DNA of 64,000 bases, from sequence record NC_041916.1; one strand, given 5' to 3'. The translations under genes were made by a program, and so were the position numbers. Shown piece by piece: positions 1 through 31,290 of this stretch (position 1 is the first letter of the stretch; every line of letters begins with the position of its first letter). The notes beneath the pieces were generated by a model, which did not search any database, was not told the origin of the DNA, and saw only the letters and a program-made list of their open reading frames with translations.

Positions 1-3000
1 TGATGGTTGTTCCTGAAAGGGTGGTTGTACTACCTGCTATCGCTAGAGGGAGTTCCATCGTGTCGATAGAAACACCTTCGGCACCCGTGATGTTACTCAC
101 CCAGTTAATGACGTGAGTACCTTCAACGCCGTTGCCAGCATTAAACGTGTACGTCACCACTTCTTCAGTGTCACGAGTGAACTGGTAAGCGATTTGACCG
201 TTTTCATCAGTCATGGATTGAGGGAACGGAATACCGCCATCATCCCAAACCACACTCACGTTCGGCATAGGTTGCCCGAATTGGTCTTTCGTCAAGATAG
301 TAACATTGGCTGTTTCAGCAATGGTTGCTGTCTCAGGACCAGTGATCTCAATAGAGGTTACCACTGGAGGTGGAGCTGACCATGTAACAGTCAGAGTTAA
401 GTTCTCAACCGGACCGCTGCCGATGAAGTTGTAAACCACATCGCCGACTTCGTTAGCATTCAACGTAAACGTTGCGATACCATCTTGGTCAGAAGTGCGT
501 GCCGGCATGTTAGTACCACCGTCACTCCAAGCCACAGATTGACCAGCCATCGGATTACCGAATTGGTCTTTCGTTAGGATTTTAACTTCTAACGCTGTAC
601 CTGTTGTGCCCGCTGTTGGTGACTGAGTAAACTCCATGCTAGTGAAGATTGGATCAGGAAGACTCCAAGTAACTGTATGACCGATACGAGGAATGTTAGG
701 TTCCCAACCAAATTCGTAAAGCACGTCACCCGCTTCTGTAGCGTTGTAGTCGAACGACCACTTACCGCCCGGAGGTGAGCGGAACGCATCGCCCGGAGTA
801 CCGTTGATGAACGGACGGACTGATACGCCTTCGATTGGATTACCGTATTGGTCAAGCGTCATGGCTTCCAGTTTGACTGGTGTGCCAACTTCACCGGTGC
901 TTGGTTGTTCACCAACCCAAACGATGCTGGTGTATTCAGGTGGAACCAAGTGACCCCACTCAATATCAAACGATTCAGAAACCACAGCCCCAACATGAAC
1001 CGTGTAAGTCTTCTTCGTGTACTCAGCATAGCTGAGCGGGAACAAGAACTTACCTTCAGTGTCGATTGTACTTAATGTTTCACCGCCTTCAGTATCCACC
1101 AACTTAGCCACAACCACAGAGTTAGGAACTACGATTTGATCGTCAGCCGATAACAAGTGACCAGTTAGTTCAACTTCTTCACCTTCACTTGGATTTGCGC
1201 TGTGAGTATCAATAGCGATAGCTGTGTACTCTTTAAGCGGTTCATCCACCCAGCTGCTGTTCACTTGGGTACGAGCGTTCTCGGTGTAGATCATCACTTC
1301 AATAGAAGCGTCAGTCATACCCTCGATAGTGTACAGCCCGCGACCATGTTGGTTCGCATCAGGTGTGATAGTTAACGGTGTGAAGTTAGTGAAGTCAAAC
1401 GCCCCGATAACTGGGTTAGCAATCACCGCATCGTTCTGATCAGTAACCGTGATGTCAAACAACATCGCTTCACCGTTCACAGTAGGTTCGATGTTCAGTA
1501 CCTCTGTGATCGCCGAGCCTACCGGTTGATCAGTAAAGCTGACTTCGTAAACCCCAATGACCGTCGTTCCCACTTTAACTTCCAACATGACCGTTGAGTT
1601 TGGTTCTGTTGAGTTAAAGAGCAGCACCCCGTAACCTCGAGCATCCGTGTAAGTACCACGAATAGGTTGAGCACCACCTTGGATGTAAAGGTCTAGTGGA
1701 AGATCTACAACATCTGCACCAGCGTTCGTTGCTTTGAACGCCAAGAACACTGAACCGTCGTTAGCAGCACGTGTTGTAGAGAACGGAAGTTTTTCTACCG
1801 AGTCGTAAGCCGGAATAACCAACTCGACTTTAACAGTACCGTAAACTAGATCAGCGCCCGCACTCACGATCAATTCGTGATCACCTTCTTCGACCATATT
1901 AACATCAATACGGAACGAACCACCAATAGTTGGTGTGCTAACGTAATCAATCCCCGTTAGTTTGTCAGTGACTGTAACGACAACACCTTCAAGTAGATTA
2001 CCGTCTTTATCTTGGACGTTACCAGTAACCGCTACTGGTTTGTTAGGCAATGCTGTCGCAGGAACCACTACGTCACTAAGCACAACTTGTTTAGCTTCAC
2101 CATCCCAAGTAACAACGATGGATGTTTCTGATTCAACAATGTCGGTGAGCTTAGCTTTAATAGTGACAATCTCAGGGTCAGTAATAGAAACCACGTAAGC
2201 CTCTGAAACTTTACCTGTAGCGTAACCTAAGTGATCTGTAGTACCACCACTGATGTTTCCATACATCTCTTCAGAGTAGAAGTCTACCCACACGTTAGCA
2301 ACGCCTTGGTGAACTTGGTTCATTGCTCGAGCAACCAATGTTGCTTGCTCACCGTGTGCGACGGTTTCAGTGGTTGCTTTAGACATCTCAACCAACAGAT
2401 CGTCACGGAACGTTAGTGCAAACTCACCATAGTTCTCACCAGCATCACCTTCGTACTCTTGGTCTTCGAACCAGAATGTGTAGTCACCCGCCTCGTTCGG
2501 TACTACCGCTGAGTAAATTTCACCGTTAGGGCCGATGTGTGCGTAACCACCGTTGTAATCAACCCCGTCCATCTTACGATGTACAGCCACTTGAATACCG
2601 TAAGCTGGTTTGAATGGGTTACCGTCCGCATCTTGCGCTTGAGCCATGATAGGGAAGTAACCACCATCATTAACCATACCAACTGTCGGTGCGTCTGCGG
2701 TGAGCACGATCTTAGCTGGAGTAACTACATCGGCTTCGTCGACGACGACTAGGTCAAAGTAAACGCGGGAGTTAGATTGGCGGTGCCACATCACCATTGG
2801 GTGAGTACCCACCCCTAGTTTGAAGTCGCCGAACATTTCAGCGGTTTCAACGTTGTACACGGATGTTCCGTCAAGCACATAATCAGGAGAAGAAACAGAC
2901 ATCGCTTTGAAAGAAGGTAAGTGGTAAACATGCATGCCTTGAAGACTTGAGACGGGTGTACCAAGTTTATCTACAGCAGTGCATTTCACTACAGCTGATT

Positions 3001-5080
3001 TACCTACTTGTGTCTTCTCATTAATAGTGAAGTTAGCAAGTTCCATTACGCTCGGTCTTACATTACTACGAGTGTAATTCAGACGCAGTTGCTTGTCTTT
3101 GTACTTCGCCAAGTAGTAGACCGTTTCAAAGGCTTCAGTAAGTGGTGTATCCACCGTGACTTTAAGTTCAGCGAAACCGTATTCGTTGGTCATCACTGTC
3201 CCTAACTCTTCACCTTCGACTTCGTAGAAATCCGAACGGTAGAAGGTTACAGGTACGCCTGCCGCAGTTTCACCGTCGGCTGTAATAGCTGCAACACCAA
3301 TCAAGTCCTCAGTTCCTTCCGGTGTGGACTCGGTCATCCATGGTAGTGCTCTGAAACTTTCAAAGACTGGAACGCTGTCAATCCACGTGGTGTCATGATG
3401 TTCTGCTACCGCATTGGCGGCTAAGATCAATTCGTGATCACCGATAGGTAACGGACCGTAGTTGATGTTGAAACTGCCATCATCTCCAATTGCACCGTTC
3501 TCACCAAATTCTTGGTACTCCAATGTCGAGACGTTAAAGATACCGAGTTTCGTATCTTTAATAGGCGCACCGTTTTGGTCGTTCAGCACACCTGTGATCG
3601 TCATAGCGACATTATCTTTAGACTGGGTAGGGAAGACTACGTCTCTCAACGTCAAGCCCACAGGAACGCTTGCAGGCTTCCAGTAAACACCCGCCACTGC
3701 TTTAGACTCACCCACGATAGCGGTGATCTCTTCGTAGGTACGGTTTTCATCACCGCCCTGACTGATAGGAACTTCGAGGATGTGGTTGCCATCCACCGGT
3801 GTATTGGTGTAATGACGTTTACCAGAGCTCTCGATGTAATCTACCGCAGCAGCGGGTACCGCTTTACCATTAGTACCAGTAACAACGAAAGCAACAAAAC
3901 CATCCTGACCGGTAGGGACAGCATCGTTACCATATTCACACTTACTAATCGTTAACCCATCACGATATTCGAATTCGTGATCAAGTTTAGAAACCCCGTC
4001 AATCATCACGCCTTGACGTTGTGTCTTGGCTGTGTCTGATTGCGCGTTAATCACCAAAGAACCGTCTGGCAAAATAATGCCGAAAGACTTAGATGACCCG
4101 TTAATGGTGTTGTTGAATTTTAACTCGTTACGAACTTTAACCACTTCACCATCAGCGTTATAAGCAATAGCCTTAACGTAAGTATCTACCACGGTTGGGT
4201 AGACATGAGCATCGGGTGCAGTTAAACGAACCGTATCGATCACATCACTGACTTGGTCTTGCCACGTAACCGTAACGTCTTTACGACCGTTATCAGAGAA
4301 GAAGCACAAACGGTGTGAACCTTCACCTTGGTCATTCGGAGCCATGATGATACGACCATCAGGGTCTTGGTAAAAGTTAGAACTGATGATGGACAGTTTG
4401 TCTTTACTAAAGATGTCGAAGTTGTAAGGCTGAATAATCACTTCGCCATTTTGGTCTAACAAGTAACCACCCAGAACCGCACGACCACCCGGTTCCACTT
4501 CGTCAGTGTACATGAAGTCGGAAATCGCGTAAGTCAAAGGCTTGCTGTCGGTCGTCCATTCAACCGTGTGTGTTGCGATGGTTTTGCCAATGGTGGCATT
4601 AAAACGACGCGGACCTAATGCTAAGCTACCCGATTCCGTTGTAGGAGAAACTAGGAACTCAACGATACCGAAGCGGTCAGTGTTTACTGTAGCCGTCGGG
4701 TTCGGGTCTGAACTGTCGTCGTAGAACGTTACAGGTGCGTTTGGTACACCTTTACCATCAGGGTCAGTTACCGCAAAGGCGATCAATGCACTATGACCTT
4801 GGTGGGTTTCACTGGAGGAATAAGGGAGAACCGTTAAGTTCAAATCGTCTACGAAGAAGACTTCGTAAGAACCAACTTCTAACCCGTTGTACATGAATGT
4901 GATATCACATTCCCCTACCTTTTCAGAAGTCAGGTTAAATGACCACGTACCGTCTGGTTCGGTGATCACGGAGATGTCATCCCCACCATCACTTCGAACA
5001 CCGGTAATGGTTACTGGTTTTCCGGGCACGATAGGTCGACCCTGAGCATCCAGTATATTACCCTTAATAATCCCAATCAT
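1..5080 (-). CDS. Giant Ig-like (invasin/Big_1-like) repeat protein, probable tail fibre/adhesin; >=1693 aa, 3' end outside window
   Basis: Not in the ORF track because it has no stop in the window. ATG at 5080 after GGAG; my manual translation stays open to position 2 (MIGIIKGNILDAQGRPIVPG...MELPLAIAGSTTTLSGTTI). ~95-aa beta-rich repeats with DQxGxP and TDxxG motifs, similar to the C-terminal part of the upstream gene. Confidence 0.85.
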   Translation of the reverse strand, partial: MIGIIKGNILDAQGRPIVPGKPVTITGVRSDGGDDISVITEPDGTWSFNLTSEKVGECDITFMYNGLEVGSYEVFFVDDLNLTVLPYSSSETHQGHSALIAFAVTDPDGKGVPNAPVTFYDDSSDPNPTATVNTDRFGIVEFLVSPTTESGSLALGPRRFNATIGKTIATHTVEWTTDSKPLTYAISDFMYTDEVEPGGRAVLGGYLLDQNGEVIIQPYNFDIFSKDKLSIISSNFYQDPDGRIIMAPNDQGEGSHRLCFFSDNGRKDVTVTWQDQVSDVIDTVRLTAPDAHVYPTVVDTYVKAIAYNADGEVVKVRNELKFNNTINGSSKSFGIILPDGSLVINAQSDTAKTQRQGVMIDGVSKLDHEFEYRDGLTISKCEYGNDAVPTGQDGFVAFVVTGTNGKAVPAAAVDYIESSGKRHYTNTPVDGNHILEVPISQGGDENRTYEEITAIVGESKAVAGVYWKPASVPVGLTLRDVVFPTQSKDNVAMTITGVLNDQNGAPIKDTKLGIFNVSTLEYQEFGENGAIGDDGSFNINYGPLPIGDHELILAANAVAEHHDTTWIDSVPVFESFRALPWMTESTPEGTEDLIGVAAITADGETAAGVPVTFYRSDFYEVEGEELGTVMTNEYGFAELKVTVDTPLTEAFETVYYLAKYKDKQLRLNYTRSNVRPSVMELANFTINEKTQVGKSAVVKCTAVDKLGTPVSSLQGMHVYHLPSFKAMSVSSPDYVLDGTSVYNVETAEMFGDFKLGVGTHPMVMWHRQSNSRVYFDLVVVDEADVVTPAKIVLTADAPTVGMVNDGGYFPIMAQAQDADGNPFKPAYGIQVAVHRKMDGVDYNGGYAHIGPNGEIYSAVVPNEAGDYTFWFEDQEYEGDAGENYGEFALTFRDDLLVEMSKATTETVAHGEQATLVARAMNQVHQGVANVWVDFYSEEMYGNISGGTTDHLGYATGKVSEAYVVSITDPEIVTIKAKLTDIVESETSIVVTWDGEAKQVVLSDVVVPATALPNKPVAVTGNVQDKDGNLLEGVVVTVTDKLTGIDYVSTPTIGGSFRIDVNMVEEGDHELIVSAGADLVYGTVKVELVIPAYDSVEKLPFSTTRAANDGSVFLAFKATNAGADVVDLPLDLYIQGGAQPIRGTYTDARGYGVLLFNSTEPNSTVMLEVKVGTTVIGVYEVSFTDQPVGSAITEVLNIEPTVNGEAMLFDITVTDQNDAVIANPVIGAFDFTNFTPLTITPDANQHGRGLYTIEGMTDASIEVMIYTENARTQVNSSWVDEPLKEYTAIAIDTHSANPSEGEEVELTGHLLSADDQIVVPNSVVVAKLVDTEGGETLSTIDTEGKFLFPLSYAEYTKKTYTVHVGAVVSESFDIEWGHLVPPEYTSIVWVGEQPSTGEVGTPVKLEAMTLDQYGNPIEGVSVRPFINGTPGDAFRSPPGGKWSFDYNATEAGDVLYEFGWEPNIPRIGHTVTWSLPDPIFTSMEFTQSPTAGTTGTALEVKILTKDQFGNPMAGQSVAWSDGGTNMPARTSDQDGIATFTLNANEVGDVVYNFIGSGPVENLTLTVTWSAPPPVVTSIEITGPETATIAETANVTILTKDQFGQPMPNVSVVWDDGGIPFPQSMTDENGQIAYQFTRDTEEVVTYTFNAGNGVEGTHVINWVSNITGAEGVSIDTMELPLAIAGSTTTLSGTTI

Positions 5081-5146
5081 TATTAACTCCGTTAATTAGG
5101 TTAATTAAATTCTTTTGTTGACATCATCGTTGATTAAAGGATGAAA

Positions 5147-5168
5147 TAGGGGGAACGAATTCCCCCTA
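5147..5168 (-). terminator. UUCG-capped hairpin between the two Ig-repeat genes (weak terminator or processing signal)
   Basis: TAGGGGGAA-TTCG-TTCCCCCTA on the minus strand; only a short T run follows. Confidence 0.6.
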
Positions 5169-5206
5169 AGATTATGGACTGTCTTGTGACACTAAATCAC
5201 AGACCC

Positions 5207-8200
5207 CTAGATTATCGTCGCCGAACCTTTCATGGTTACGGTGTCATCGACGATACCCACCGGTGGTGAGTCTTCCGCAATATCAATACGGATTTCGAAC
5301 GGCTTCGGTAAGACCTCACCATTTTCAATCAGAATGTATTTGTTGGACGATTCATCCACGTTCACACGGTTAATGGTAATCAAGCCATCGATGACCTCGA
5401 CGCTCACTTCTTCGTAGTAAGAGCCAGTGTAAAGAATCATGTCTTTAACACCCGCTTGGTCCCAAGGACCGATTTCTACGTCAAAGAGTTTAGAACCACC
5501 GTCTACCGCACTTTGGTTGTAGTTGTAGTTATGACGATCGTACAGACCGACAGGCATGCTGCTGATCGGGTTACCACGTTGATCGATCACTTTACCACTG
5601 ACGTTGAACAGGTCGCCTAGGGCGATACCAGTTGCTTTAGTCAGCTCAGAGAACGACGTAGGTAACAAGATGCTGTCCGAAGACCAGTCTACGTTATGTT
5701 CATCACGTTTGCCAGCGTACACTGCAATAGCGGTTACACGATCACGGTCAACGATGTAAGGAACTCGGAATGTTGCCACGCCGTATTCATCTGTTGTCGC
5801 TTTCGCGTTCAACACACCATTGCCTTCGATAGAGATACCGAACGTACCACCAACAACTGGGTTACCCAAGTTATCTTTAAAGCCGTACGCCAAAGTAGCT
5901 TCTTTACCGAAGTGTAGATCAGAACTGCTGTAAGGTGCAGGATGCATCACCACGTTGTCGTGGTAGCGTACTGTGAGGTCACCCATGCCGATGTCATTGT
6001 CACCCGCTGGTGTCAACTTCCAAATAACTGTATCTTCTGCTCCGTGAGTCAGTGTTACTGTCCAGTTACCTTCAGTGTCAATGACACCTTTAATAACCGC
6101 ACCGCTTACTGAGTTCACTGCATCAAATTCAGTTTCCTCTGTAGGAGTAAATGGAGTGCCATCCAACTGATGCGCTGTACCCGTTACCACCATATCTGAG
6201 TTGGTTGTCCAGAAGTCACTTAGGTACTCTGATGGACGTAGGTCAGCCAACACCATAGGGCGAGCGTTCCAAACCACTTGTTCATTTTGATGGTGCATGT
6301 TCAATGCGAACACTACGTTGTTAGTCCCTTCTAGGAATGGACCGTAAGTTGCGTTCAACATACCGTCGCTGGTCAGGTTGTCTGACAGATCAACCAATTC
6401 CAGTTTCTCTTTCGAGAACACAACCGCCCAACCATTTTCAGCAGACTGGTTACCGTTTTGTGTTAACACGGTACCGTTGACGCTTAGTGGGTTAGGAAGT
6501 TCGGCTTGACGGACGATATTCAAAATACCGAAACTTGCCGGGTATTGTTCTGAATCGTTGACTTCCACCCAAGTAATGTAACCCTCGGACTTAGTATCAC
6601 CGAACACAGACTCGACATTATCGTTCTCAACAAACTCACCCCAACGTAGGGTAGATTCTGCGATACCGAATCGGTCAGTACGTACTTTGCTGATTGGTAC
6701 GTTAGGGAACGCATTCAGTCTAAACTCTACTGTGGCGTTAGGAACCCCATTGCCTGCTGCATCTTTAACGTAAGCCGCGATGAACACGTCTCCGCCTCGG
6801 ATAGCAGCGTCTTGAGAGTATTTAGCGTACGTGACTGCCGCACCACTGATGAACTTAACTGCTTTAGTAGCAATGTCTTGTCCATCTTTCACAAAGCTGT
6901 AGTGCCATTGACCGTCACTGCTTTGTTCCACTGGTATTGAAATCGTACCATCAGGCATCGCCCAAGCAGTACCGAACTCAACATCGTCAGTACGACGGTA
7001 ACTAACTTCAACCGGACCTTGGATACGCATACGTTGTTCACCTTCTTCAGGTGTCCAGCGCATAAGCTTACCATCGATCAACGTTTCCGCACCAGTGCCT
7101 ACTACCTCGGCAGTATCAGTTGGGATCATCCAACCAATCGCTGCGTATTGAACAGCCGGAGCTGACAACCAAGTGATCGTTCTAGTGAACTGAGAAGACT
7201 CAGTGTAGAACGCAATGTCGTGTTCCCCTTCTGATTGTGCTGCCAAATGTCCGTAGAACATCTCGCGGTCATTATCGTGCTTGGTTAACGTTACAGTTTG
7301 TAGTGTACGTTTGTTAAACGCTGACATAGCTGTAACCGGAACGTAACGATCGTTAAAGCCACCCATCGCCACTGCAACAACTGCATCTGAGCCCGCACCG
7401 ACTGTGTCAGTATGGTCTGACCAACGAACCATAACAGGCAAGCTGTAATCGTTCTTAGTCCAGTTGATGGTATGTTCTTCATTGAAGTCATTGGTGTAAC
7501 TAGCCAGTACTTTGATGTCGCCATCCCAGTAAACTGGTACCATTTGAACTTCGCCGAACACGGTGGTTTCTTTTGGATTCTCATCGTTGTCCGGAAGGAT
7601 GAATTCAGCAATACCGTTTTCATCAGTAAGAACAGTTTGTGACTGTAGACCCGCGTAACGCAAACTGATGGTTACAGGGATGTTAGGTACAGCGTTGCCG
7701 TACTCACCCATGGCAGCAATTGCTACAAAACCTTGTTCACGGTAAACCTGACGGGTGTTAGAGTAAGGTAGTACGCGAAGACCTACTACTGGTTCGGCTT
7801 CACCAACCCACTCGATGGTTTCTTCACGAATGTCATAACCTGTTGCGAACAACAGATGACGTGTTCCATCCCAAGAGCTTCCGCCTGCGATTGTTGCTGA
7901 CAGACTACCGTCACCGCCAAACTCGTAATAAGGAGGACGATGATTTACGTCAGACGCTGTACCACAGTCAACGTAATCGAACGAACCTTTATCAAAGATA
8001 AAGAAGTGTTCAGTCGGACTACTTTCACCTGCTTTCGCGCTCACGCCAGTGGTCAGTCTTACTTCACCACGACCATAACCGATTTGATCGATAAACGTCA
8101 CATCAATTACATCAGCCATTAGTGGATCAGTTGTACCAGCATCGTACCAAGTCACCGTTTGAGTTCTAGGCTGTGCCTCAACAAACACACTCGCCACACC

Positions 8201-11200
8201 GGAGGTGGTTTCGATAGTTTGACTTGTACCACTCAACACTGTTGGAGTGTCAATGACACCATTGGTTGGTGTGTCTGGGTTAAACGAAGCGACTACTGTA
8301 TTGGTTCCCGGTACCGCATCGTCACTACCAAGCACCAGTTCCATGATACCCCACTCATCGGTAATACCGTTCGTGTAGATTTCATTTTCTTCTGGGTTGA
8401 TAGCTTTCAACAGAGTCAGCCCTGCTACTGCTCGATCGTGTTCATCACGAACACCCCAAGCTACTCGCGCCGATTCCCCAGTAAAGCGGAAGGTTTGAGA
8501 GTAAGGCAGTTCTGTTACCGTACCATTGATGTATTCGATTTCAAACGTGGTTAAGATGCGTGAACCATCTTTGATGGTGTACACAACTGTACCCGCGCCC
8601 ACTACATCATGGATGTAGAAACCGATTGAACCGTCACTGTTAACCACGGTGTTACCAGTTGAACCGTCACTACCTTCCCATGTTACTGGGGTAGGAGTAG
8701 ATGGTTGGTAAACCGATTCGTCACCTGCAATACCTGTACCACGAATGTAGACCGTAGGAGCATCTACCGGAGTTAGGGCTTTTGTTGCGGTGTCGTCAGC
8801 CAGCTCAATGCGAGATAACACTTTATCGTAGACTCGCCATGTGATCGGCCACACTTTAGTATCACACTCAGAGAAGAACACTAGGTTGTGTTTACCTTCA
8901 GGAAGTGGATCCACCCAGAACGCTTGTTCACCGTTACCTAACACACCTGCCCAATCGTTAAGATCGTGTGCTGGAGGTAGGTTATCCGGGTCGTAAGGTT
9001 GTAGAGTCACCAAAGAGTAATCGTCACGGTTGTAACACATCAAACGACCAGTAGGGACTGGGTCGCCTTCTTCATTTGATACAACTGCACGCACTAACGG
9101 TGTAACACCGTTGTAAACAAACTGTGGTGCGTTAAATGAAGAGATCGTGTGAGCGATGTCTGTTTCTTCTGTCCAAATTAATTCCACCGTTGCTTCTTTC
9201 TCACCAGCAAAGCCAGCGATTTCACCAAAGCCTGTTTGGTAGTAAGGAACTGTGTATTCAAACTTACCGTACTTGTCAGTTATGCCATAACCCAAGTCTT
9301 TCTCTACCGGCAAGCGTTGGACGATGTCAATGCGTTGACCTACCATCACATCACCGTTCTCGTCTACCACGTACCAGCCAATGGTCATGGTCTCACCCAC
9401 CGGAATGCGGTAGTCTAGGTCGACGTTAGGTAATGGACGAATAAAGATCTCGCCTTCGAATTTAACTGTGAATGTACCGACTACACGAGTGTTAGATTTA
9501 AAGGTGTATTGGATATCGCCTTCTACATCGCTAGATGCTTTGAACGACCAACGACCATCACCCATGGAGTGTGCTTTCGCTACATTACCGTTACCGTACT
9601 CTACATCAAACTCGAATTCAGTGCCCGGAGCAAACAGTTTACCATGTTGGTCTACTGTCTCACCCTCCAACAACGCTGGAAGACCAAGTTTCGTTTCACG
9701 CGGCAAGCCGGCGTCAAACTTCAAGTTGTCTAAGCGTGCTGGTTCACCCATCCAAGTAATGGTGTGGGTTACCGGAGCCTTACCTTCTAGTTCAAACAAG
9801 AACGTAGTAACTTCCCAATCTTTAAACGGACCGACTTGAGTTTCAAAGCGACCGTCGATGCCTGCGTAAATCAGATCAGACTCACCGCTACCTAGTCGGG
9901 TAACCTTGATTGGGGTTTGACCTTCACTTACAAAGTCATTGCCTTCTGCATCCACCAATTTACCGGAAATAGCCACGGTAGTACCGGCAGGTGCTTCTGT
10001 TGGGTTTTCACTATCCAGTACAATGCGGTCAGCCACGATAACTTCTTTCTCCCACGTTGCCGTGCCGAAAGCGAAGTCGTTGTCTGTCCATACGACGATG
10101 TCGTAAGTATTGCCCGGTTCCATGTACGCGTGGTTCAACACATACGTACCTTTAGCGGCTGTCGTAGTAACGTTAGCCGGATTCCATTGAGGGCCGAAAC
10201 CAAACGTTGTAGTGACACCTTGTACCAGTTCACCGAATTGATCGTAGACACGACCTGTGACCGCCATTTGATCGGTACCCACAAAGGTCCAGTCAATTTG
10301 GTCTAAGGTGATGCGGTCGCCGTAAGACTCAGTTTCTACCCAAGTCAATACACGAACGTCGTCGGTACCGCCCGCCTTGATGTTCATGACTGCAACTTTC
10401 TCATCACCCGTATGGAAACGAGTCAACAAGAAATCACCATTTTCATCTGTGGTCTCCGCTCGGATAGTATCCAAGTCATCACCAACCATGGAGTAGAATG
10501 GGAAGTCACGTAGACGGTTTTGTTCGTCGTCTTCCAAGTAACCGTAAGCGCGTGCAGGTTTGTTCACACCCACTTTCGTAGGAGAGTAAGGATAGAACTC
10601 ACTAACGATGGTGTTTTCATTCTCGATGATCTCGATATCTTTTTCCAAGATATAAACTGGTGCTTTACCCGTTTCGAATGCAAACTCGATAGTTTCAGTT
10701 TCACCTACTGGTTTCTCGGACCATGTGTAGAAGCGGAATGAACCGTCAATCTTCACAGGAACTTTACGTGGGGACTTATCGTGGAATACACCACCACGAA
10801 CCATTAAGTTCGTTAAGCCGTCTTTCATTGGTTTACCGAACTGGTCGTAAACCACACCACTTACCGCAAAGACTTCATTCAGACCAATGCGACCCACTAC
10901 TTCACGATCAAGTTCAATCGACGTAGGTTCTGGTGTTTCTGTACTTGGGCCTTCCACGACATCAATAGAGACACCTGTGGTTGCCAATAACAGACGTTCG
11001 CCTTGAATGGATTCGTAAACCCAACGAACAAAGATCGTACGACCTTGTGGTTCTTGTACATCCAAGTAAAGCTTGTCTGCCCATTTCGATATCGCGTAAG
11101 AGTACACTTTACCTGAGCTGACTTCAATCTCAAAGTGAGTAGGTTTCATCGGACCTTTCTCACGCTGGCTATTGTACGACGGTTCTACTGCATAGTAGGT

Positions 11201-12667
11201 GTCTTCCAACCACTCGTCTTGAGATTCGTAACCTTTACCGAATTCGATTTGCTGACGACCATCGGCTTGGTTAACCGCTTTGAACGTAGGGTCGTTGTAA
11301 GCACTTTGATCGTAAGAATAACGAACGTCAAACTTGCTGCCGTCTTCGTTACCCGGTGCTTTCAGAATGAACGTCGTAGACTGACGCATGATCATTGGTT
11401 CGAACGTAGGAACCACATCACTTAGACGTAGGTTCAACTCAATGGTTTGTTCCACGCCGTAAGTCGTAGGACGGAAAGCAGGAGACAACTCATTGATACG
11501 AACGTAATCGGTAGCGTCCATAATGAAAGAACGATCTAAGTCGGTCAGGTAGTGTTTCAACTGGTACTGACCATTCACCCATGTAGGGTAAGAGTAAAGC
11601 TTAGGTGAGTAAGCCCCGTCGAAGTCTATCGCCAGCAATGAGTAAGAATCTCGGTACTGGTTCGGGTTACCCGGTTGAGCTTCGTAGATGTGCTCGTCTG
11701 GGTCCAAGTTGTACACTAAGGTCAAAGTACCACGTTGCCCCGGAGTCGAAGGCTTGTGTTCATTCAGACCGTACAAAATGACCTTCTGACCATCGATCGG
11801 TAACTCTTCTGATTTCGAACCGTCACTGTAGTGCACCAAGGCACGGAATGCCAAGTTTTGCAGCACCGTGTTAACTGGCACGTTCAGAGTTTTAGGGTCA
11901 CCAGAGTTCAGGAACCAAGGAGCGAGCAACTCCACTTTACGGATGTAACGTTTACCCACTTGGTGGTCACGTAGCATAGCCGTGTGCTGAACCGTTAGCG
12001 AACGCGCTTTCGGAATCATGTTACCGGTATGGTCGAACCACACCAAGGTCGCACGACTGCCATCTGGCAGTTCTTCCGCATTACGGTTCACGGAGAATGG
12101 TTGAGTAACCATGATCTCTTTGTTCGACAAATCGTGGTGTGCAGCTAACGTAGCAGGAATGCGGTTAGAGATCATTTCGTTGTTACTACCGTACACAACC
12201 GAAATGACTTTACCATTTTCCCCTACGGTGTTGCCTTCGTACAACAGAGCGTACGCGGCACCCGGTGCCATTACTTGACCATCTACCACGGCACGGTTAG
12301 GACGCACTGAGTAGTCGATACCAACGATCGCTTCTCCTTGGTAACCCGCAGGCAAACCAAAGATGGAGTTAAGTGGGTCGGAGTTACCATCACCACCGGT
12401 GTTAAAGATAGGTTCTAGGGTAGAACGTAAGTCCCCTTCCCAGTTAACGTGCGAAACGATGTACCATTGTTGAGCGACAGGGTCAACGACCATTTCTTTC
12501 TCTTTAGGTACACGGTAACGACTCTCCTCCCCCGGCTTCACCGTATCAGGGTTATAGACATCCCAAATATAGTGAAAACGTCCGGCTTCATTATCGTTAG
12601 GGAGCTGTGGACCAGCTCCCGGGATAACGGCGGATTGGGTAGGACTGTTTAAAGTTTTACTAAACAT
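5207..12667 (-). CDS. phiKZ gp26-like baseplate protein (N-terminal ~580 aa) fused to a ~1900-aa Ig-like repeat array
   Basis: Start moved to the ATG at 12667 (GAGG RBS; MFSKTLN). Lies next to gp27/gp28-like, sheath and tube genes. A P/T/E linker (GPSTETPEPT, ~10940) precedes repeated Ig-like domains. Confidence 0.75.
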   Translation of the reverse strand: MFSKTLNSPTQSAVIPGAGPQLPNDNEAGRFHYIWDVYNPDTVKPGEESRYRVPKEKEMVVDPVAQQWYIVSHVNWEGDLRSTLEPIFNTGGDGNSDPLNSIFGLPAGYQGEAIVGIDYSVRPNRAVVDGQVMAPGAAYALLYEGNTVGENGKVISVVYGSNNEMISNRIPATLAAHHDLSNKEIMVTQPFSVNRNAEELPDGSRATLVWFDHTGNMIPKARSLTVQHTAMLRDHQVGKRYIRKVELLAPWFLNSGDPKTLNVPVNTVLQNLAFRALVHYSDGSKSEELPIDGQKVILYGLNEHKPSTPGQRGTLTLVYNLDPDEHIYEAQPGNPNQYRDSYSLLAIDFDGAYSPKLYSYPTWVNGQYQLKHYLTDLDRSFIMDATDYVRINELSPAFRPTTYGVEQTIELNLRLSDVVPTFEPMIMRQSTTFILKAPGNEDGSKFDVRYSYDQSAYNDPTFKAVNQADGRQQIEFGKGYESQDEWLEDTYYAVEPSYNSQREKGPMKPTHFEIEVSSGKVYSYAISKWADKLYLDVQEPQGRTIFVRWVYESIQGERLLLATTGVSIDVVEGPSTETPEPTSIELDREVVGRIGLNEVFAVSGVVYDQFGKPMKDGLTNLMVRGGVFHDKSPRKVPVKIDGSFRFYTWSEKPVGETETIEFAFETGKAPVYILEKDIEIIENENTIVSEFYPYSPTKVGVNKPARAYGYLEDDEQNRLRDFPFYSMVGDDLDTIRAETTDENGDFLLTRFHTGDEKVAVMNIKAGGTDDVRVLTWVETESYGDRITLDQIDWTFVGTDQMAVTGRVYDQFGELVQGVTTTFGFGPQWNPANVTTTAAKGTYVLNHAYMEPGNTYDIVVWTDNDFAFGTATWEKEVIVADRIVLDSENPTEAPAGTTVAISGKLVDAEGNDFVSEGQTPIKVTRLGSGESDLIYAGIDGRFETQVGPFKDWEVTTFLFELEGKAPVTHTITWMGEPARLDNLKFDAGLPRETKLGLPALLEGETVDQHGKLFAPGTEFEFDVEYGNGNVAKAHSMGDGRWSFKASSDVEGDIQYTFKSNTRVVGTFTVKFEGEIFIRPLPNVDLDYRIPVGETMTIGWYVVDENGDVMVGQRIDIVQRLPVEKDLGYGITDKYGKFEYTVPYYQTGFGEIAGFAGEKEATVELIWTEETDIAHTISSFNAPQFVYNGVTPLVRAVVSNEEGDPVPTGRLMCYNRDDYSLVTLQPYDPDNLPPAHDLNDWAGVLGNGEQAFWVDPLPEGKHNLVFFSECDTKVWPITWRVYDKVLSRIELADDTATKALTPVDAPTVYIRGTGIAGDESVYQPSTPTPVTWEGSDGSTGNTVVNSDGSIGFYIHDVVGAGTVVYTIKDGSRILTTFEIEYINGTVTELPYSQTFRFTGESARVAWGVRDEHDRAVAGLTLLKAINPEENEIYTNGITDEWGIMELVLGSDDAVPGTNTVVASFNPDTPTNGVIDTPTVLSGTSQTIETTSGVASVFVEAQPRTQTVTWYDAGTTDPLMADVIDVTFIDQIGYGRGEVRLTTGVSAKAGESSPTEHFFIFDKGSFDYVDCGTASDVNHRPPYYEFGGDGSLSATIAGGSSWDGTRHLLFATGYDIREETIEWVGEAEPVVGLRVLPYSNTRQVYREQGFVAIAAMGEYGNAVPNIPVTISLRYAGLQSQTVLTDENGIAEFILPDNDENPKETTVFGEVQMVPVYWDGDIKVLASYTNDFNEEHTINWTKNDYSLPVMVRWSDHTDTVGAGSDAVVAVAMGGFNDRYVPVTAMSAFNKRTLQTVTLTKHDNDREMFYGHLAAQSEGEHDIAFYTESSQFTRTITWLSAPAVQYAAIGWMIPTDTAEVVGTGAETLIDGKLMRWTPEEGEQRMRIQGPVEVSYRRTDDVEFGTAWAMPDGTISIPVEQSSDGQWHYSFVKDGQDIATKAVKFISGAAVTYAKYSQDAAIRGGDVFIAAYVKDAAGNGVPNATVEFRLNAFPNVPISKVRTDRFGIAESTLRWGEFVENDNVESVFGDTKSEGYITWVEVNDSEQYPASFGILNIVRQAELPNPLSVNGTVLTQNGNQSAENGWAVVFSKEKLELVDLSDNLTSDGMLNATYGPFLEGTNNVVFALNMHHQNEQVVWNARPMVLADLRPSEYLSDFWTTNSDMVVTGTAHQLDGTPFTPTEETEFDAVNSVSGAVIKGVIDTEGNWTVTLTHGAEDTVIWKLTPAGDNDIGMGDLTVRYHDNVVMHPAPYSSSDLHFGKEATLAYGFKDNLGNPVVGGTFGISIEGNGVLNAKATTDEYGVATFRVPYIVDRDRVTAIAVYAGKRDEHNVDWSSDSILLPTSFSELTKATGIALGDLFNVSGKVIDQRGNPISSMPVGLYDRHNYNYNQSAVDGGSKLFDVEIGPWDQAGVKDMILYTGSYYEEVSVEVIDGLITINRVNVDESSNKYILIENGEVLPKPFEIRIDIAEDSPPVGIVDDTVTMKGSATII

Positions 12668-15242
12668 TTTTAACCTCAAAGTGTCCGTTAGTATTAATAC
12701 GAGATTCTAAGAAAACCTCATTAACCCGTTGTATGAAAATCAATTGCTTCGGTTCTACCACTGGTACGTATTGCTGTACATACGGGAAGACCGCAAAGTA
12801 ACGAACATCGTAACCCAATTGTACAGGGTCGTACTTAAGCAACCATTGAAAATCTGCTGTCTTACGCAATACATAGTCTTTGGAGTAAGATTCACCACTA
12901 GGTAGGTCATCCAGTTCCAATAGACCGAGTAAGATACGGTTCACTACCATGTTCATGAACGGACTGTACACACGGTACTTATCCATTAAAGAAGGGATGG
13001 CTTGTGGAGCAGGTTTCTTCGCAAACAGTGTTAGGTACTGACTCATTCGACGGTCACGGTCTCGTGCTTCTTCCCAACCATGTGAAGTATCGTACGGTAC
13101 CCAGTCTCGAAGAGGTAGATACCAATGTTTCACACCGTACGGTTTCCCGTTCAATGGGTTCAACACTTCACTCGGTGGATTGAGTTCCGCCACCGCTACC
13201 TTAGCCGGGTCCCAGACCTTACCATCGATCGTAGTGCGCGTTATACGGTCTTCTCGCAAGTTGTATTGACCATTATGACCAATCACACCACCAGTGACGT
13301 AACCTAACTCAGATTGTTCCAGAGGGGTCTTATCGTCGATTGGTGACCACTCACTACAATAAAGGACGAAATCGTTTCCTCCGTCTTTTAAGTATTGGTG
13401 GTTTAAGATATGAACGTCAGGGAAGTCCACCACGTAATCCACGTTCTCTATTAAAGAACGACGGTTCATGATGACCATGATGTTAGCTGGTGCAATGTCC
13501 ACCAACAACCCACCCTGAATCCATTCTCGTGTGACACTGAAAGATAATGAATTATCGATGTGGTTTAACGTGAACTCTTTGTACAACGTTTGGTCGTTGT
13601 AAACAATCAACCCCATGAACATCTTAGACGCCAATGTCCATGTCACGTTCCCCGTAGCACGATCAAAGAGATAGTCTTTCCCTTCTTCCGCCACCATTCG
13701 TTCTCCGGAGTACTCTCCTTCGGTGGTGACCGCCTGAACGTAAAAACGCGGCGTTGTGTTAGGGTCAACGTTCATCACCCCTCGACCGGCTTCTGCGTGA
13801 ATACGACGTCCCGGTTTACCCGGGAAGAATTCCACTAACCCAACATCACTGCTTGGTCTGACGAAATTCACACGACTTAAATATCGCATGCGAAGGAATA
13901 ACCCTTCCGAATCGTATTCAAACATGGTGAGGTCTTTACGACATGCAGGAGGGACTTCGAGTTCCGCTCCTGTTGAAGCGTCGTAAGACACAGGAGAAGC
14001 ACAGAGCACTTGCGTGGCTCGGTTGTACCCGATCGCCTTCATCGCCAAATCGTGGTTAATGTCCTTATAAGGGATGGTCAAGAACTCGTTTGTGGCGGAT
14101 TGTTCCAGATTGACTGCCAGCCATTCTTTCATGGTGGAGTTAATCCCGATCAATGCACCAACGATGTTCTCGTCATTCATGCGGTATAACCATCTCGCTC
14201 CATTAGACTCATAAGGAATCTCTTGAGCGTAGTTATTACGACGATACACCAACAACAACTGAGGACGGTCTTCGTTCACCATTTCTTGCATGTTGGTTTT
14301 ATCGTCCACCAAGGACGCGTTGACAGCGTAGTCGCGGTGAGTCAATTGACGGAAGTGACTCGCTTCGTTACGGTTAAGATACACCCCACGTTTCTTACGG
14401 TTCACTAAATAAAAGGCGACATCCGCCACATAGTGATACGTAAAGTCCCCGTCGACTTTAGGTGGGTGAACAATTAACTTACGAACGTTATCTCGCTTAG
14501 ACTGGAAGTTAGGCAAAGAGCCAACCTCATACATTTCTGTTTTCCAGACGCTAGGGTCATTGGTGATTTCGATGACCTCCGTTCCTAACAGTTGATCGTC
14601 CGCTGGAAACCCATCCCACAAATAACCATTCAAGTACACCGAGGTTAAACCCGGTAACTTGAGGTATTGTGCATAGATGATTTTCATGCGGTCTTTTTCT
14701 TCCGCTGAGTTATCGTTGTTAGAACTGAACCGCGGCCAGTCTAATTGTTGATTGTTGGTAAGTGGATTGTAAACTTCGGTTTGTATCGTGTAACAGTGAA
14801 CATAACGAGGTTCTTTCCAGCTCTGTTTGAATGCTCGCAACTTTTGTATCGCTAACAATTGTTGTCCGTCGTAAGTCGACATAATCCAACACTTGTCTCG
14901 AGGATATAAACGACCGTCATCTCCGTAGATGTCGACGATCATACCTCGTTCTTTACAAATCTTCGCAACGTTAATCCATTGGTCTACCGGATCCATGCGA
15001 GTGAACAATTCATGGAAGTTCCATGTCGAGCCATCAAAGCCAGACATGTTGTAAATCATGAAGTAGTCTCGTTCAATCGGAGTCTTGCGGTAACGTCCCA
15101 TGAACTGGAACGTGTTAATGTATCCCACGTCCGGTGATACCTGTGTCAGCATCAACTGAAACTGACGACCGGTACCGGGATTGGAATACATGTCCTTAAT
15201 GGCGTAACGCGCTAAAGGGGTGCGATAATTATCGACTAACAT
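12660..15242 (-). CDS. Virion structural (baseplate) protein, phiKZ gp27-like, 860 aa
   Basis: Long ORF with GAGGGG RBS; size and position match the gp26-gp27-gp28 / sheath-tube block. Confidence 0.7.
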   Translation of the reverse strand: MLVDNYRTPLARYAIKDMYSNPGTGRQFQLMLTQVSPDVGYINTFQFMGRYRKTPIERDYFMIYNMSGFDGSTWNFHELFTRMDPVDQWINVAKICKERGMIVDIYGDDGRLYPRDKCWIMSTYDGQQLLAIQKLRAFKQSWKEPRYVHCYTIQTEVYNPLTNNQQLDWPRFSSNNDNSAEEKDRMKIIYAQYLKLPGLTSVYLNGYLWDGFPADDQLLGTEVIEITNDPSVWKTEMYEVGSLPNFQSKRDNVRKLIVHPPKVDGDFTYHYVADVAFYLVNRKKRGVYLNRNEASHFRQLTHRDYAVNASLVDDKTNMQEMVNEDRPQLLLVYRRNNYAQEIPYESNGARWLYRMNDENIVGALIGINSTMKEWLAVNLEQSATNEFLTIPYKDINHDLAMKAIGYNRATQVLCASPVSYDASTGAELEVPPACRKDLTMFEYDSEGLFLRMRYLSRVNFVRPSSDVGLVEFFPGKPGRRIHAEAGRGVMNVDPNTTPRFYVQAVTTEGEYSGERMVAEEGKDYLFDRATGNVTWTLASKMFMGLIVYNDQTLYKEFTLNHIDNSLSFSVTREWIQGGLLVDIAPANIMVIMNRRSLIENVDYVVDFPDVHILNHQYLKDGGNDFVLYCSEWSPIDDKTPLEQSELGYVTGGVIGHNGQYNLREDRITRTTIDGKVWDPAKVAVAELNPPSEVLNPLNGKPYGVKHWYLPLRDWVPYDTSHGWEEARDRDRRMSQYLTLFAKKPAPQAIPSLMDKYRVYSPFMNMVVNRILLGLLELDDLPSGESYSKDYVLRKTADFQWLLKYDPVQLGYDVRYFAVFPYVQQYVPVVEPKQLIFIQRVNEVFLESRINTNGHFEVKNV

Positions 15243-31260: not shown

Positions 31261-31290
31261 AACTCCCATCCCCGTTAGGAGATGGGAGTT
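31261..31290 (-). terminator. Terminator hairpin
   Basis: AACTCCCATC...GATGGGAGTT followed by ATTTCTTTTTTTATTTTTTT. Confidence 0.85.

Follow-up and report, generated by a model that had tools for sequence, protein, structure and literature searches.

A conserved boundary between two giant immunoglobulin-repeat genes of Vibrio phage pTD1

The 64,000-nucleotide (nt) stretch of DNA analysed here (the window) comes from the genome of Vibrio phage pTD1 (NC_041916, 239 kb; Gorgonvirinae, Tidunavirus), a phiKZ-like, nucleus-forming jumbo phage. Two genes on its minus strand, gp161 (open reading frame 1, ORF1) and gp160 (ORF2), are very probably translated separately, across a boundary that predates the split of the Gorgonvirinae genera and a spacer that serves as a terminator-plus-leader region. 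An earlier reading made from the letters alone (the sequence-only reading) had taken the junction for an immunoglobulin (Ig) domain cut by fission of one ancestral gene. That reading is supported in part. The junction would be a normal, ancient boundary in a tandem cluster of genes for giant Ig-repeat virion proteins. ORF1 is homologous to gp26, a baseplate-periphery protein of phiKZ, but has acquired about 1900 amino acids (aa) of Ig-like repeats and ends in one or two partial strand A/B stubs. The spacer would be regulatory, with a terminator-like hairpin conserved in structure and a U-rich tail, followed by an AU-rich leader with GGAG. ORF2 would start at its own ATG with a specialised head, an A-type Ig fold from strand B, of the kind that heads every anchorless protein of the cluster. 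The frame shared by the two genes in pTD1 would be due to chance, and neither bypassing, readthrough nor frameshifting would join them.

Conservation of the boundary

The ORF1/ORF2 boundary was present in every relative found. These fall into three lineages: Tidunavirus (pTD1, VP4B and phiKT1028; gaps of 126, 129 and 125 nt), Aphroditevirus (Aphrodite1, 2 TSL-2019, PDCC-1, phiKT1019 and USC-1; gap of 10 nt) and a third, metagenomic lineage (two genomes, L013 and L014; gap of 10 nt). The boundary lies at the identical ORF2 residue in all three, and the N terminus of ORF2 invariably reads M-[IA]-G-I-I-[KR]-G. The Aphroditevirus gap is GAAATAATAA or a near variant; ORF2 is there in the +1 frame, with TAA TAA in its own frame directly before the ATG.

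The proposed fission of one ancestral gene came with its own check, a fused orthologue, and none was found in related phage records, in IMG/VR (where six aligned head sequences brought up no further genomes), by word searches or by an exhaustive search of representatives. A word search with the ORF1 C terminus (lengths 1370-4357 aa) returned only proteins of about 2485 aa, and one with the head domain (lengths 1941-6176 aa) returned only proteins that start with the head. The strong matches of the exhaustive search, which covered 1.84 billion representatives, all began at residues 1-3 except for one internal match. This protein (P0013, 3943 aa) was rejected as a fused orthologue, since it carries a signal peptide, shows only about 30% identity and is an invasin-like adhesin of bacterial origin. 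Since no lineage searched holds a fused orthologue, fission, if any, is older than the genus split.

The common frame of the two genes is not conserved. Gaps in relatives measure 129, 125, 125 and 10 nt, and one nucleotide of the spacer, at 5144, is deleted in a metagenomic relative with 99% identity. ORF1 of VP4B stops two codons earlier than that of pTD1. In phiKT1028 a frame change brings the stop about 10 codons forward, so that the homologue of the last ten pTD1 codons lies out of frame and untranslated. Because neither the frame nor the ORF1 tail is conserved, the shared frame is put down to chance, as the sequence-only reading had allowed, and bypassing or readthrough has no basis.

The spacer

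The sequence features named in that reading (a 126-nt in-frame spacer, in-frame stops, a UUCG hairpin and a GGAG ribosome-binding site) were all recovered. ORF1 ends in ACG ATA ATC TAG (C terminus ...IRIDIAEDSPPVGIVDDTVTMKGSATII), and ORF2 opens at an ATG (5078-5080) as ATG ATT GGG ATT ATT AAG (protein MIGIIKGNILDAQGRP...). Beyond the terminal TAG of ORF1, the shared frame holds TAG, TAA and TAA within the spacer, which makes four in-frame stops overall.

Two hairpins are predicted in the spacer. The one next to the ORF1 stop has counterparts of different sequence at the same site in VP4B and phiKT1028. The second (UAGGGGGAA-UUCG-UUCCCCCUA) lies 39-60 nt past the stop. It was matched by a terminator consensus scan at 5150-5166 and has the expected form of a GC-rich stem-loop with a U-rich tract after a stop codon. 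The structure is kept in phiKT1028 with another stem and loop (GAAGGGGAG-GCAA-CUCCCCUUC), so that the hairpin is conserved by structure and not by sequence; a terminator function is suggested by these features. A scan of 4900-5400 against Rfam gave only sub-threshold chance matches (blv_FSE, 18.6 bits, gathering score 34).

The start of ORF2 lies within a 79-nt island (-44 to +35 relative to its ATG) of DNA that is near-identical in pTD1, VP4B, phiKT1028 and a fourth, metagenomic Tidunavirus lineage; the flanks are less than 80% alike or replaced. It contains the Shine-Dalgarno (SD) sequence GGAG (5087-5090), six bases upstream of the ATG. The island may serve as an anchor for recombination or as an element of translation initiation. 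It was rejected as a repeated promoter motif, being single-copy in the genome. A weak hairpin with the SD in its loop (AUUAAC-GGA-GUUAAU) was likewise set aside, as the phiKT1028 variant introduces one wobble and one mismatch and lends it no support.

Split-domain profile analysis

A profile of the A-type Ig domain was built from 146 internal domains in the cluster proteins of seven genomes, each taken with 30 upstream residues. Its 106 positions comprise the end of the preceding domain (1-7), a region of linker, strand A and the start of strand B (8-34) and, from 35, the conserved i-t-G-k-v-l-D strand with the remainder of the A domain. ORF2 of every lineage enters this profile at about position 31 of 106 (I5 at position 35); its first domain therefore lacks the linker and strand A. 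In agreement, pTD1 ORF2 enters Pfam Invasin_D3 at 27 of 98. To this extent the claim that ORF2 begins in the middle of an A domain stands.

The resemblance of the ORF1 end to an A-domain start was borne out as well. Its last 33 aa align to profile positions of about 10-42 with 9.5 bits, against a shuffle mean of 2.5 (standard deviation 1.5; n=500; p ~0.006). The boundary thus falls inside the A-domain profile, as the description of a split Ig domain has it, but the two pTD1 ends are not halves: the ORF1 tail overlaps the first strand of ORF2 by about 11 profile positions (TMKGSATII vs IIKGNILDA), and judged by the profile the two are not complementary.

The ORF2 head domain

The AlphaFold2 (AF2) model of ORF2 residues 1-290 has a mean predicted local distance difference test score (pLDDT) of 73.6 and gives the head six to seven strands, listed at 3-8, 24-29, 36-39, 45-50, 56-64 and 67-76. 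Internal A domains carry an extra N-terminal strand, modelled with low confidence in ORF2 (191-195) and with a pLDDT of about 76 in ORF1 (102-107). The modelled head has no counterpart of this strand A and thus lacks the edge strand that a donor-strand acceptor is expected to miss.

The head is also the most conserved part of ORF2, with invariant columns at 32 of 76 positions; the two domains that follow have 16 of 89 and 4 of 125. A profile of the head scores 91-113 bits at residue 1 of 12 anchorless Ig-array proteins (gp160, gp159, gp158 and their counterparts) and at most 25 bits internally. Because it scores high only at N termini, the head is a distinct subtype confined to that position and not simply as an internal A domain cut in two, which is where the mid-domain description falls short. 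It is probably the attachment module of the anchorless Ig-array proteins.

The ORF1 C terminus

Behind its last complete A-type domain, ORF1 of pTD1 carries two partial A-domain starts. The first holds a conserved peptide (DGLITINRVNVDESSNKYILIEN) homologous to the extreme ORF1 C terminus of the two lineages with 10-nt gaps (...FVNFDSVGIDESSNRVALITK and ...FFYFKEVEIDPESNTVALITE); V, D, S, N, L and I are invariant in the alignment. Orthologues of this stub in the 10-nt-gap genomes match profile positions 8-31 (shuffle p 0.004-0.01), and the pTD1 copy alone gives no significant profile score (p 0.12). Lineages with 10-nt gaps thus end ORF1 in a single stub that abuts the ORF2 start seamlessly on the profile, and pTD1 ends it in two. 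No significant paralogue of the pTD1-only tail was found among all cluster proteins.

The last 26 residues of ORF1, which had been put forward as the missing half of the split domain, do not suit that part. They form its least conserved window (35% identity to VP4B and 23% to phiKT1028), are shortened in VP4B and are frameshifted away in phiKT1028. The conserved upstream peptide would be the better candidate for a complementing strand.

C-terminal stubs recur in the cluster. Gp160 of pTD1 (L001:18430-18601, just beyond the window) and its VP4B equivalent end in two tandem partial A-domain stubs (...VSIDTMELPLAIAGSTTTLSGTTI and ...SITVDEMETPMGTTTGTTTISGNAS). A single stub closes ORF2 of the third lineage, and the other proteins of the cluster finish exactly at the end of a domain. 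The gp160 stubs are followed by a 119-nt spacer with a hairpin and then by the head-domain gene gp159. The pattern of the first junction is therefore seen again at the second in pTD1 and VP4B, and not in phiKT1028.

Alternative explanations

Several observations weigh against an ordinary gene boundary. In the 10-nt-gap lineages the ORF1 end (profile 8-31) and the ORF2 start (from about 31) make up exactly one A domain. Invariant columns are about twice as dense in the conserved peptide of ORF1 as in the Ig bodies, and ORF2 residues 1-120 are 82-85% identical to VP4B as against 27-37% further on. A search for RNA runs that hold the region found none, and terminator activity and independent initiation are both inferred. 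Ends that complement each other on the profile exceed what an ordinary boundary calls for and hint at a functional or historical link. They can be explained by an ancient split or by a repeat unit that runs from strand B to strand A, and we infer either an old split or a phase shift within the Ig array as the origin of the boundary.

A functional link could take the form of beta-strand complementation in trans, which would add to the two-gene reading and not replace it: the strand-A peptide of ORF1 would insert into, or augment, the head of ORF2 that lacks strand A, and baseplate-anchored ORF1 and anchorless ORF2 would make one long, non-covalent Ig fibre. This is plausible, if rather unlikely: the 10-nt-gap ends match to within one profile position, and the segments on both sides of the junction are unusually conserved. 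The head is the only possible anchor domain of ORF2 and is modelled without the extra N-terminal strand, and the last 50 residues of ORF1 are predicted to be unstructured when alone (model residues 200-250, pLDDT <50). Gene order is conserved, the genes are tightly coupled in two lineages, and C termini of phiKZ gp26 insert into neighbours (PMC13250141). In pTD1, however, 33 poorly conserved residues come after the conserved peptide and overlap the first strand of ORF2 on the profile. Moreover, each genome has two to five head-bearing proteins, which would be in competition for a single ORF1 tail. Heads also follow proteins that end flush with a domain (phiKT1028 ORF2, pTD1 gp159 and Aphrodite1 ORF2). 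Many Ig and transthyretin-like domains are stable with the equivalent of strand B first, and the strand-A segment of an internal A domain in the ORF2 model is itself of low confidence. It is rather unlikely that the Ig-array proteins of the Gorgonvirinae build very long baseplate fibres by strand complementation across a split Ig domain; if they do, a pilus-like donor-strand mechanism of reversed polarity would operate in a virus.

A recent fission in the pTD1 lineage, with a terminator/ribosome-binding-site cassette inserted into a single ancestral gene, is very improbable. Compared with the 10-nt-gap lineages, Tidunavirus does have a longer tail (by 33-41 residues) and a longer spacer (by about 115 bases), and the number and size of the Ig-array genes vary by lineage, so boundaries in the cluster do move. 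The proposal is contradicted by a boundary at the same ORF2 residue in all lineages and every genome found; what is lineage-specific is the tail and the spacer, not the split, and the head domain occurs at N termini only.

A fused product of about 4200 aa, made by T4 gene 60-type bypassing or by readthrough of the stop codon, has next to no probability. In its favour, the pTD1 stop follows directly on Ile AUC, ORF2 codons 2, 4 and 5 are AUU (same tRNA), landing at codon 5 would yield a canonical strand (...GSATII-KGNILD) and a stable UUCG hairpin lies within a gap that keeps the frame. However, the matched take-off/landing pair is not conserved (VP4B ends AGC-UAA and phiKT1028 GAA-UAA, with no consistent landing codon), and the UUCG hairpin lies away from the take-off site in a gap of 126 nt as against 50 nt. 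No part of ORF1 is less conserved than the tail, and the 99%-identical relative has lost the common frame. Four in-frame stops are present in pTD1, and TAA TAA precedes the ATG in the ORF2 frame of the 10-nt-gap lineages; the genome shows no genetic code that would read such stops as sense. No Rfam recoding element reaches threshold, and ORF2 has a strong, ultra-conserved SD and ATG. The sequence-only reading had rightly disfavoured bypassing, on the grounds of the good ribosome-binding site and of unmatched codons.

Genome and baseplate context

ORF1 consists of an N-terminal phiKZ gp26-like anchor and about 1900 aa of Ig-like repeats (Pfam Big_1; phrog_3430 and phrog_27497), and ORF2 of Ig-like repeats throughout, with no anchor domain among its Pfam and PHROG profile matches. 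Big_1 scored 60.6 bits in ORF1 and 107.4 bits in ORF2 (cut-off 34.9), and Invasin_D3 scored 40.1 bits (cut-off 33). These matches are a fold label only, with nothing pointing to invasin function. The fold matches of the AF2 models were generic Ig/macroglobulin arrays (SbsC, invasin, complement C3 and filamin). A literature search on the pTD1 genes gp161 and gp160 found nothing. Coordinates are collected in Table 1.

Homology of ORF1 to the gp26 family is full-length (phrog_3430, E 1.3e-145, profile positions 8-551 of 554). Gp26 of phiKZ (552 aa) cross-links the outer periphery of the baseplate; each star lobe contains five copies, and the gp26 termini are inserted into adjacent proteins (PMC13250141). 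The phiKZ gp29-gp26 synteny is retained as sheath, gp28-like, gp27-like and gp26-like genes; gp162 (860 aa, DUF7193) and gp163 (292 aa, PhiKZ_VTX) occupy the places expected of phiKZ gp27 and gp28. The longest ORF1 frame starts with a TTG at 12679, and the annotated ATG at 12667 agrees with the orthologue start MF(E/S/D)K (region 12660-12679, minus strand). In all lineages the ORF1 start overlaps the gp162 end by 8 nt, which suggests translational coupling.

In the vibriophages ORF1 is trailed by two to five anchorless Ig-array genes, their number and sizes depending on the lineage. The pTD1 cluster (record positions 164278-187943) encodes proteins of 2486, 1726, 1630, 1156 and 756 aa. Six genes are found in phiKT1028, proteins of 1588, 3529 and 2548 aa in Aphrodite1, and of 1579, 3712 or 4470, and 1444 aa in the third lineage. 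Two otherwise near-identical metagenomic genomes have ORF2 lengths that differ by 758 aa.

Across the genome, nine loci (0.8 expected in shuffles) carry long hairpins that form perfect palindromes (TAACTCC..TACC..-loop-..GGTA..GGAGTTAT), in many cases with T-runs behind them. The sites include 31261-31290 of the window and genome positions 39990, 52771, 73632, 111632, 117547 and 161810. This family probably represents phage-specific bidirectional terminators.

Table 1. Features at and around the ORF1/ORF2 junction of pTD1 (positions in the window).
Feature	Position	Strand	Remarks
ORF1 (pTD1 gp161)	5207..12667	-	2486 aa; annotated 'virion structural protein'; stop TAG 5207-5209
gp26-like anchor of ORF1, residues 39-557	10997..12553	-	phmmer against PDB: 9xqd chain a, PHIKZ026, E 2.4e-59
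Last complete A-type Ig domain of ORF1, residues 2338-2426	5390..5656	-	AF2 model strands 102-190, pLDDT 72-86; profile match 2354-2426
Stub 1, conserved peptide DGLITINRVNVDESSNKYILIENGEVL	5309..5389	-	linker, strand A and strand B start of an A domain
Stub 2, Tidunavirus-only tail PKPFEIRIDIAEDSPPVGIVDDTVTMKGSATII	5210..5308	-	second partial A-domain start, profile ~10-42
Intergenic spacer	5081..5206	-	126 nt = 42 codons; ORFs in common frame; all three frames closed
Small hairpin	5181..5204	-	starts 3 nt past ORF1 stop; fold prediction
Terminator-like hairpin	5147..5168	-	9-bp stem, then U-rich tract 5132-5146
79-nt island	5046..5124	-	AU-rich leader, SD GGAG, ATG, first 11 ORF2 codons
ORF2 (pTD1 gp160)	2..5080	-	1726 aa, 1693 inside the window; annotated 'putative invasin'
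ORF2 head domain, residues 1-78	4847..5080	-	A-type Ig-like sandwich starting at strand B

Significance and comparison with known systems

For annotation, gp161 and gp160 should stand as two genes, neither of them a pseudogene, with no recoding site between them. A core protein of the phiKZ-type baseplate periphery, gp26, has been extended into a giant Ig fibre in these vibriophages. The conserved, profile-complementary ends at the junction offer a concrete, testable hypothesis for the attachment of anchorless chains to the virion. The Ig-array proteins are probably determinants of host adhesion, in phages under development for aquaculture phage therapy.

The long tail fibre of T4 (gp34-gp37) is likewise built of successive long structural proteins from consecutive genes, joined end to end non-covalently; its proximal protein is anchored in the baseplate, and N-terminal parts are conserved and distal parts variable. 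The pTD1 chains, however, are monomer-type Ig-like arrays (Big_1, invasin and macroglobulin-like) and not trimeric beta-helices, and their joining is hypothetical. Ig-like domains on phage structural proteins (Fraser et al. 2006) are reportedly of the Big type, appended to virion proteins and presumably accessory adhesion modules. By comparison, the scale in pTD1 is far larger (about 7700 aa in five genes), and a programmed frameshift is not involved.

Chaperone-usher pili (Fim and Pap) share with pTD1 an Ig-like domain that lacks an edge strand and a neighbouring chain with an unstructured, strand-like extension. In pili, however, the C-terminal G strand is missing and an N-terminal extension donates, whereas in pTD1 the N-terminal A strand is missing and a C-terminal tail is the candidate donor; pTD1 has neither chaperone nor usher, and the interaction is putative. 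T4 gene 60 resembles the junction in having a stop immediately behind the final sense codon and, between two coding segments, an untranslated gap with a UUCG-capped hairpin. It differs in that its gap is 50 nt as against 126 nt in pTD1 and 10-129 nt among relatives, and in that the UUCG hairpin of pTD1 is not at the take-off codon and ORF2 has its own strong SD and ATG. The closest counterpart of ORF1 itself, phiKZ gp26 (PHIKZ026, 9xqd), is homologous to its residues 39-557 and lies in the same synteny; the phiKZ protein has 552 aa and stands alone, whereas the Gorgonvirinae version is longer by Ig repeats of 1000-1900 aa and has two to five further Ig-array genes behind it.

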